A stretch of 63,346 bases of DNA, filler included, from Choristocarpus tenellus KU-1152 (lineage: Eukaryota; Protista; Phaeophyceae), in NCBI GenBank assembly GCA_964200185.2. It is 12 parts of 12 records of this genome, joined end to end, with 100 filler letters (N's around TTAATTAATTAA, not from the genome) between each part and the next. Parts side by side here need not be neighbours in the genome. Positions count along the whole stretch, not along the records: positions 1 to 7,891 come from CAXNAD020005435.1; 11 more parts are not named here. One strand, 5' to 3'. Below the pieces are notes generated by a model that searched no databases, was not told the DNA's origin, and was given only the letters and a program-made list of their open reading frames with translations. Within the stretch, counting starts at the first letter, position 1. Each line of letters opens with the position of its first letter. Shown in pieces: positions 7,470 to 7,622 of the stretch. The translations under genes were made by a program, and so were the position numbers.

Positions 7470-7622
7470 TTCAATTCTTAACCATTTTAAGTGGTCTTCG
7501 TACGCATCTCGCTCAAGAGAGCTGAAATTCATTACATCAAGTACTGTTAAAGCCTTTTTTAAATTATTATCATCTAGGCCTTTTGGTAAGTTATCGGGTT
7601 GTAACAAGTCATTTCTTGTTAA
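7470..7622 (-). pseudogene. Fragment of a bacterial Rpn-family (PD-(D/E)XK nuclease/putative transposase) gene, Rickettsiales-like, inside a PRP8 intron
   Basis: Minus strand reads [51 protein letters not shown] without stops and with AT-rich codons (TTA, AAT, GAT). This resembles the C-terminal KAL..L...NF...ER.AYE...K.LR.E segment of Rpn proteins from Rickettsiales endosymbionts (recognised from memory). Confidence 0.75.

Follow-up and report, generated by a model that had tools for sequence, protein, structure and literature searches.

How could a piece of an endosymbiont nuclease gene come to lie at the very start of an intron of PRP8, an essential gene, in the brown alga Choristocarpus tenellus KU-1152 (assembly GCA_964200185.2)? 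The window, i.e. the whole stretch of DNA that was analysed, is 63,346 nucleotides long and joins parts of 12 records of this genome, and its positions 1 to 7,891 (CAXNAD020005435.1, here contig C5435) carry the locus. The reading favoured here, with a probability of about 0.8, is that a dead, non-coding scrap of a Rickettsiaceae Rpn gene was really inserted in a pre-existing PRP8 intron of the C. tenellus nuclear genome.

The Rpn fragment and its relatives

The minus strand of positions 7470-7622 was translated into 51 stop-free codons, exactly the protein that the first-pass annotation had read there and had ascribed to a Rickettsiales Rpn gene. This origin was borne out by homology. The matching stretch (7470-7626, minus strand, antisense to PRP8) is an internal fragment of a Rickettsiaceae Rpn (PDDEXK_2) gene, 157 nt long with 54+ open codons, and it equals residues ~183-236 of its top relative, a 302-aa ORF in the Rickettsiaceae MAG OZ247586.1 (L002:2458-3366), with 94% aa identity over 54 residues. 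The DNA alignment of 7471-7626 with this locus is ungapped (89.1% nt identity over 156 nt), and protein-level homology extends to about 7631. With E 2e-31 in tblastn against the Rickettsiaceae Rpn gene and E 4e-54 in blastn, the bacterial match is far above chance.

The L002 ORF passes both family thresholds, scoring 198 bits for PF12784 and 161 bits for TIGR01784, and plasmid records label the matching stretch 'Rpn family recombination-promoting nuclease/putative transposase'. The fragment alone reached 14.8 bits against PF12784 (E 0.025, profile positions 182-218 of 229), which is below the cut-off of 27.4 because the piece is too short, and no NCBIfam profile matched it. The N-terminal PD-(D/E)XK nuclease core was absent in the fragment, and the sequence upstream was stop-rich and unrelated to the family. 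Neither a start nor a stop codon was present, since homology begins inside the gene and ends at LRIE, ~65 residues before the stop of the relative. With the nuclease core and the last ~65 residues missing, the fragment is Rpn-derived yet cannot encode an Rpn protein, and because both gene ends are lost together with the catalytic core and the remainder runs antisense to PRP8, the insert encodes nothing.

Relatives were sought in one genome per bacterial species, and 86 were found. After the top ORF came other copies in OZ247586.1, then Megaira, Tisiphia, Rickettsia, Cardinium, Chlamydiae and Holosporales, and the 80 further loci belonged nearly all to Rickettsiales, Cardinium, Chlamydiae and Holosporales endosymbionts. 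The identity to Megaira (71-76% aa) was below the 94% aa to the OZ247586.1 MAG. The donor was probably an intracellular Rickettsiaceae bacterium closely related to OZ247586.1, and the intracellular lineage proposed in the first-pass annotation agrees with these best matches, which are Rickettsiaceae (the MAG, Megaira, Tisiphia and Rickettsia) followed by other obligate endosymbionts. The AT-rich composition that had been noted relative to host exons was likewise evident, the GC content of the fragment being 32.5% vs 50% in eleven PRP8 exons and 41% in the introns of C5435. The fragment is single copy in the C. tenellus assembly and has no match elsewhere in it; the plastid and the mitochondrion, considered as sources, were rejected on this ground.

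Differences from the MAG copy were unevenly spread. Codons 4-36 (7524-7622, minus strand) were identical to it at 98 of 99 nt, and codons 37-54 (7470-7523, minus strand) showed ~70% nt identity, with 16 of the 54 nt different and nearly all of these changes synonymous. The latter codons were nearer to other Rpn paralogues, e.g. to one from Tisiphia with 90% identity over 41 nt. Such clustered and mostly synonymous differences indicate that they arose among bacterial paralogues, not through decay. The donor allele was thus a mosaic, partly near-identical to that of the MAG, as expected for a multicopy bacterial gene family. The insert would have changed little since its arrival, a recency read from a single mismatch in 99 nt, and the MAG compared is not itself the donor.

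The PRP8 exon, its donor site and the age of the intron

The host exon next to the fragment (7303-7464, plus strand, ending …QIAEIEKQ) encodes the part of PRP8 that follows the RNase H-like domain IV and precedes the MPN domain, with PF12134 exons lying before it. C5435 is full of PRP8 domain IV exons, and the assembly contains exon 7303-7464 only once. The exons were searched one by one against a reference. The exon ends at 7464 with …AAGCAG and GTGATT comes next, so the donor and the open frame 5 nt past it stand as first described, and the fragment is confirmed to lie at the start of a PRP8 intron. The first five intron bases, GTGAT (7465-7469, plus strand), were kept between exon and insert, and the T at 7470 completes GTGATT. 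The other PRP8 donors in C5435 were GTTAGT, GTGAGA, GTATCA, GTGGGA and GTGTGT; GTGATT as an abnormal donor was considered and rejected, since donors in PRP8 are very variable here.

In gene calls from other brown-algal assemblies the same exon also ended with EIEKQ, followed by GT and unrelated intron sequence. Two such contigs showed 82-85% nt identity to C5435 across exactly the exon and no further. Because the intron position after EIEKQ is common to other brown algae, the intron is older than the insert, and the insertion as creator of the intron was rejected for the same reason.

A 120-aa read-through ORF (7303-7662) was compared with a collection of 5.8 billion proteins, in which it matched only PRP8 exon fragments covering ~45% of it; no ORF spanning the junction was present there, and both 100%-aa matches came from other brown algae, with 82-85% nt identity in the exon. 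Contig C15998 carries the MPN/PROCT end of PRP8. Both PRP8 contigs meet poly-G, C5435 at its end (7870-7891) and C15998 at its start (L094:1-7). A stramenopile PRP8 segment, used as query against the whole assembly, matched only the two flanking exons and not the ~40-residue linker exon that should join these contigs. With the linker exon absent, the far side of the intron is unassembled and the PRP8 gene model of the assembly is incomplete.

Sequence downstream of the insert

Three kinds of sequence follow the fragment. An AT-rich flank (7627-7740, 30.7% GC) comes first, then a (TTGTG)n microsatellite passing into G/T-rich, eukaryotic-looking sequence without bacterial match (7741-7869), and finally the 22-nt poly-G run at the end of the contig (7870-7891). 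Only 9% of intron windows are as AT-rich as 7627-7740. This flank had no match in the OZ247586.1 MAG, in plasmids or elsewhere in the C. tenellus assembly. Against 130 Rickettsiaceae genomes nothing was matched by DNA, and the best protein match (E 0.005, in one genome) was not significant over 130. It may be host intron, or a second inserted piece, no longer recognisable, from an unsampled donor region.

When all 7891 nt of C5435 were compared with the MAG, the 130 Rickettsiaceae genomes and the plasmids, the bacterial match was confined to about 7466-7626. On its left the insert is flanked by the single-copy PRP8 exon 5 nt away, and on its right by 265 nt without bacterial match, which include the microsatellite and the poly-G run and take the contig to its end.

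The host assembly and how it was made

The assembly comprises 164 Mb in 27,310 contigs. The host is an alga: the assembly gave 63+ matches to light-harvesting proteins (LHC) and carries a plastid rbcL-rbcS operon, whose rbcL matches that of Choristocarpus tenellus exactly. Its short-read pipeline dropped reads mapping to contigs classed as bacterial before assembly with SPAdes, and NovaSeq was among the instruments used (bioRxiv 10.1101/2024.02.19.579948). Bacterial-read removal and NovaSeq account for the lack of bacterial contigs and for the poly-G contig ends. The assembly yielded neither a full Rpn gene nor any full-length 16S of non-organellar origin.

Part of a bacterial-type SSU rRNA was matched at C13979:600-978 (229 bits, model positions 929-1368). 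This small contig is neither the plastid contig C1 nor C71, the site of the other full-length SSU match, and the piece could be organelle-derived or a bacterial-derived nuclear piece.

Other rickettsial pieces in the algal genome

The 1.48-Mb MAG OZ247586.1 was sampled as four 20-kb regions, i.e. 80 kb or 5.4% of it. These 80 kb matched ~42 distinct places on ~40 algal contigs, with lengths of 67-393 nt and identities of 67-97%; examples are C8890:5542-5810 (L131), C992:11653-11808 (L135), C1078:6083-6216 (L136), C22744:1606-1998 (L141) and C6967:1157-1314 (L144). A few long weak matches (ribosomal protein S1, folD and one at 67%) may be homologues of the alga's own. Scaled to the whole MAG, the count would be hundreds of pieces. 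Some ~40 further Rickettsiaceae pieces lie inside host contigs and many of them are decayed: relative to the MAG reading frames they are broken by indels of 1, 2, 4 or 11 nt or by stops, and in many of the frame-broken ones synonymous changes are about as frequent as non-synonymous ones.

Several of the pieces are composite. In C13471 (L148) segment 2-175 abuts 176-347, in C1078 (L136) 1501-1634 abuts 1634-1718, and in C4495 (L142) 3147-3354 abuts 3355-3614 (L142:1293-1500 and 1501-1760). Pieces from distant or overlapping MAG loci are joined in them exactly end to end, and their flanks are not bacterial. By analogy they resemble the mosaic NUMTs formed by end-joining.

Three more Rpn pieces, of a second type, were found in the assembly. 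Two are N-terminal, at the end of C1225 (L095:3042-3329) and at the start of C113 (L096:2-260), and both run off the contig ends; they show 80-86% aa identity to plasmid genes of Megaira polyxenophila and 89.6% nt identity to each other. Their position exactly at contig ends fits contig breakage by bacterial-read removal, which could have cut these contigs inside larger insertions. The third is a decayed relic in the middle of C10 (C10:29323-29534, L108:1442-1653) with 3 stops and 49% aa identity to a Megaira Rpn. Exons of a proteasome beta-type subunit gene flank it on either side (Pfam Proteasome profile positions 6-62 and 75-189), which makes it a second and older intronic insertion in an essential gene.

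Some bacterial segments are present at two algal loci with 97-99% identity, and some flanks have host repeats of ~180-260 nt in common. Several bacterial pieces have a copy of a ~260-nt host repeat (78-86% identity between copies) no more than about 1 kb away, at L133:451-708, L135:1855-2108 and 2655-2909, L149:840-1097, L150:3-170 and L131:1-159. An ORF 1.1 kb from one piece resembles a Ty1/copia element by eye and had no Pfam match. Meanwhile C17930:2443-2671 (L134) matches, at 79-84% identity, a transposase-like repeat (HTH and rve integrase core) that is present in all four sampled MAG regions.

Origin of the insert

Insertion into the nuclear genome could have proceeded as follows. Lysed intracellular bacteria would release DNA, some of which reaches the nucleus, and end-joining repair of a broken chromosome would take up a piece of it, as is supposed for NUMTs, NUPTs and Wolbachia nuclear transfers. 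In this way the ~157-nt Rpn piece may have been placed 5 nt past the donor of an old and conserved PRP8 intron. As the site is intronic and the GTGAT of the donor is intact, the insert would be spliced out, and it is probably harmless for PRP8. The transfer from endosymbiont to nucleus that the first-pass annotation had proposed is supported indirectly, by the short gene-internal nature of the piece, the host exon on its left, the lack of bacterial match on its right and the ~40 further pieces; the similar patches for which it had proposed a screen were indeed present, in ~42 places matching 80 kb of the MAG and as the Rpn relic in the proteasome intron. Repeated capture of Rickettsiaceae DNA into Choristocarpus chromosomes would be the simplest account, with the PRP8 insert as a young example, and the insert most likely records an intracellular bacterial infection, present or past.

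An assembly chimera, the main rival, is unlikely. On this view PRP8 carries no insert at all, and residual reads of a bacterium that lived in or on the culture were wrongly joined behind the exon, to give either the whole 427-nt tail or the 157-nt piece inside it. In its favour, a poly-G contig end is close to the insert and the assembly has no copy of the next PRP8 exon; the filter took only reads on contigs classed as bacterial, so that reads of multicopy Rpn/RAGE sequence could survive it; two other Rpn pieces stand exactly at contig ends; the fragment is undecayed, as contaminant DNA would be; and the junction ORF was carried by no independent assembly represented in the 5.8-billion-protein collection. 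However, two false joins 157 nt apart would be needed, with k up to 127. On either side of the piece the bacterial match ends cleanly, and the tail goes on with a eukaryote-style microsatellite. Moreover, host sequence lies on either side of the ~40 other pieces, which are found mid-contig and include the one in the proteasome intron and the one with the Ty1/copia-like neighbour, and the frameshifts in many of them favour a biological process over sporadic error. This decay is supportive but not decisive, because frame-broken tra/Rpn pieces are common inside Rickettsiales genomes.

Under real insertion the route of the DNA may also be asked. Of the ~42 places, 20 map to one 12-kb module of the MAG (L129:6000-18000, about 1.410-1.422 Mb), and the other (core) MAG regions gave 6-7 matches per 20 kb. 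The genes of the module encode a 1791-aa TraA-type relaxase (MobA/MobL+AAA_30+Toprim), a TrwB/TraD coupling protein, TraD and Rpn, and it is a RAGE-like conjugative element. It is conceivable, though improbable, that hundreds of Rickettsiaceae insertions came mostly from the conjugative element and were delivered to the nucleus by the conjugation machinery of the bacterium, in a T-DNA-like manner, and not by leakage from dead cells. The skew toward the module would be explained equally well if it had a higher copy number or were better conserved between donor and MAG.

Carriage of the piece by a host mobile element or a segmental duplication with earlier-captured bacterial DNA, instead of direct insertion, is highly improbable. 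It would agree with the host repeats of ~180-260 nt flanking some other fragments and with the segments at two loci of 97-99% identity, but neither the fragment nor its two flanks recur in the assembly, and they have nothing in common with the 20 other loci that were compared. Least credible of all is that the insert was put to use as an antisense peptide, as a splicing regulator or as the origin of the intron, for although no stop interrupts its 54+ codons and a 5' splice site is adjacent, the intron position predates it, the fragment is without start codon, catalytic core and C-terminus, and its openness is accounted for by recency and by a signature of purifying selection inherited from bacteria.

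Significance

In the literature no report was found that links Choristocarpus to Rickettsiales or that describes Rickettsiaceae DNA in a brown-algal nucleus; the sole link to a brown alga found was a Megaira genome from the genome project of another species. The brown-algal genome paper behind the assembly never mentions Rickettsia (bioRxiv 10.1101/2024.02.19.579948). If real, these insertions give an early-branching brown alga a dense fossil record of intracellular Rickettsiaceae infection, which would let the association be dated, the donor lineage be found and a current infection of the culture be asked about. Removal of 'bacterial' reads before assembly breaks contigs at such insertions and hides them.

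Comparison with known systems

The nearest parallel to repeated nuclear capture is given by nuwts, the nuclear transfers of Wolbachia in arthropods and filarial nematodes (bioRxiv 10.1101/2025.03.17.643741; PMC5429809). In both cases fragments of a Rickettsiales endosymbiont are scattered in host chromosomes, mostly non-functional and decaying, and usable as a record of infection. Unlike nuwts, the Choristocarpus pieces come from one of the Rickettsiaceae and sit in a stramenopile, a brown alga; they measure 67-393 nt instead of kilobases to whole genomes, and their junctions are known from the assembly.

NUMTs and NUPTs are organelle DNA inserted in the nucleus, presumably captured by end-joining at chromosome breaks. 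They are treated further in PMC9498363. The Choristocarpus pieces are like them in size range, in tolerated intronic sites, in mosaic inserts of distant donor loci and in the presumed end-joining, but the donor is a facultative intracellular bacterium and not an organelle.

The Rpn family (TIGR01784 / PF12784) of recombination-promoting nucleases includes RpnA-E of E. coli. Its genes are multicopy on Rickettsiales plasmids and RAGE elements (PMC10732058). The fragment in the PRP8 intron derives from such a gene, with 54 of ~302 residues left from the C-terminal helical part, and is a relic that cannot act.

In the green alga Volvox, one rickettsial block of ~9 kb with four gene-like regions was described in 2015 (PMC4324946). 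As there, a transfer from Rickettsiaceae to an algal nucleus is at issue, inferred in a strain or assembly without the bacterium; in contrast to the single Volvox block, Choristocarpus has many small dispersed pieces, one of them in an intron of an essential gene. 'Candidatus Megaira' genomes were recovered from algal genome projects, including that of a brown alga (Davison et al. 2023, PMC10132079). An association of Rickettsiaceae with brown algae is common to both cases, and the Rpn pieces of C1225 and C113 show their 80-86% aa identity to Megaira polyxenophila, whereas bacterial genomes were obtained there and nuclear insertions are described here, and the piece in the PRP8 intron is closer to the OZ247586.1 MAG.
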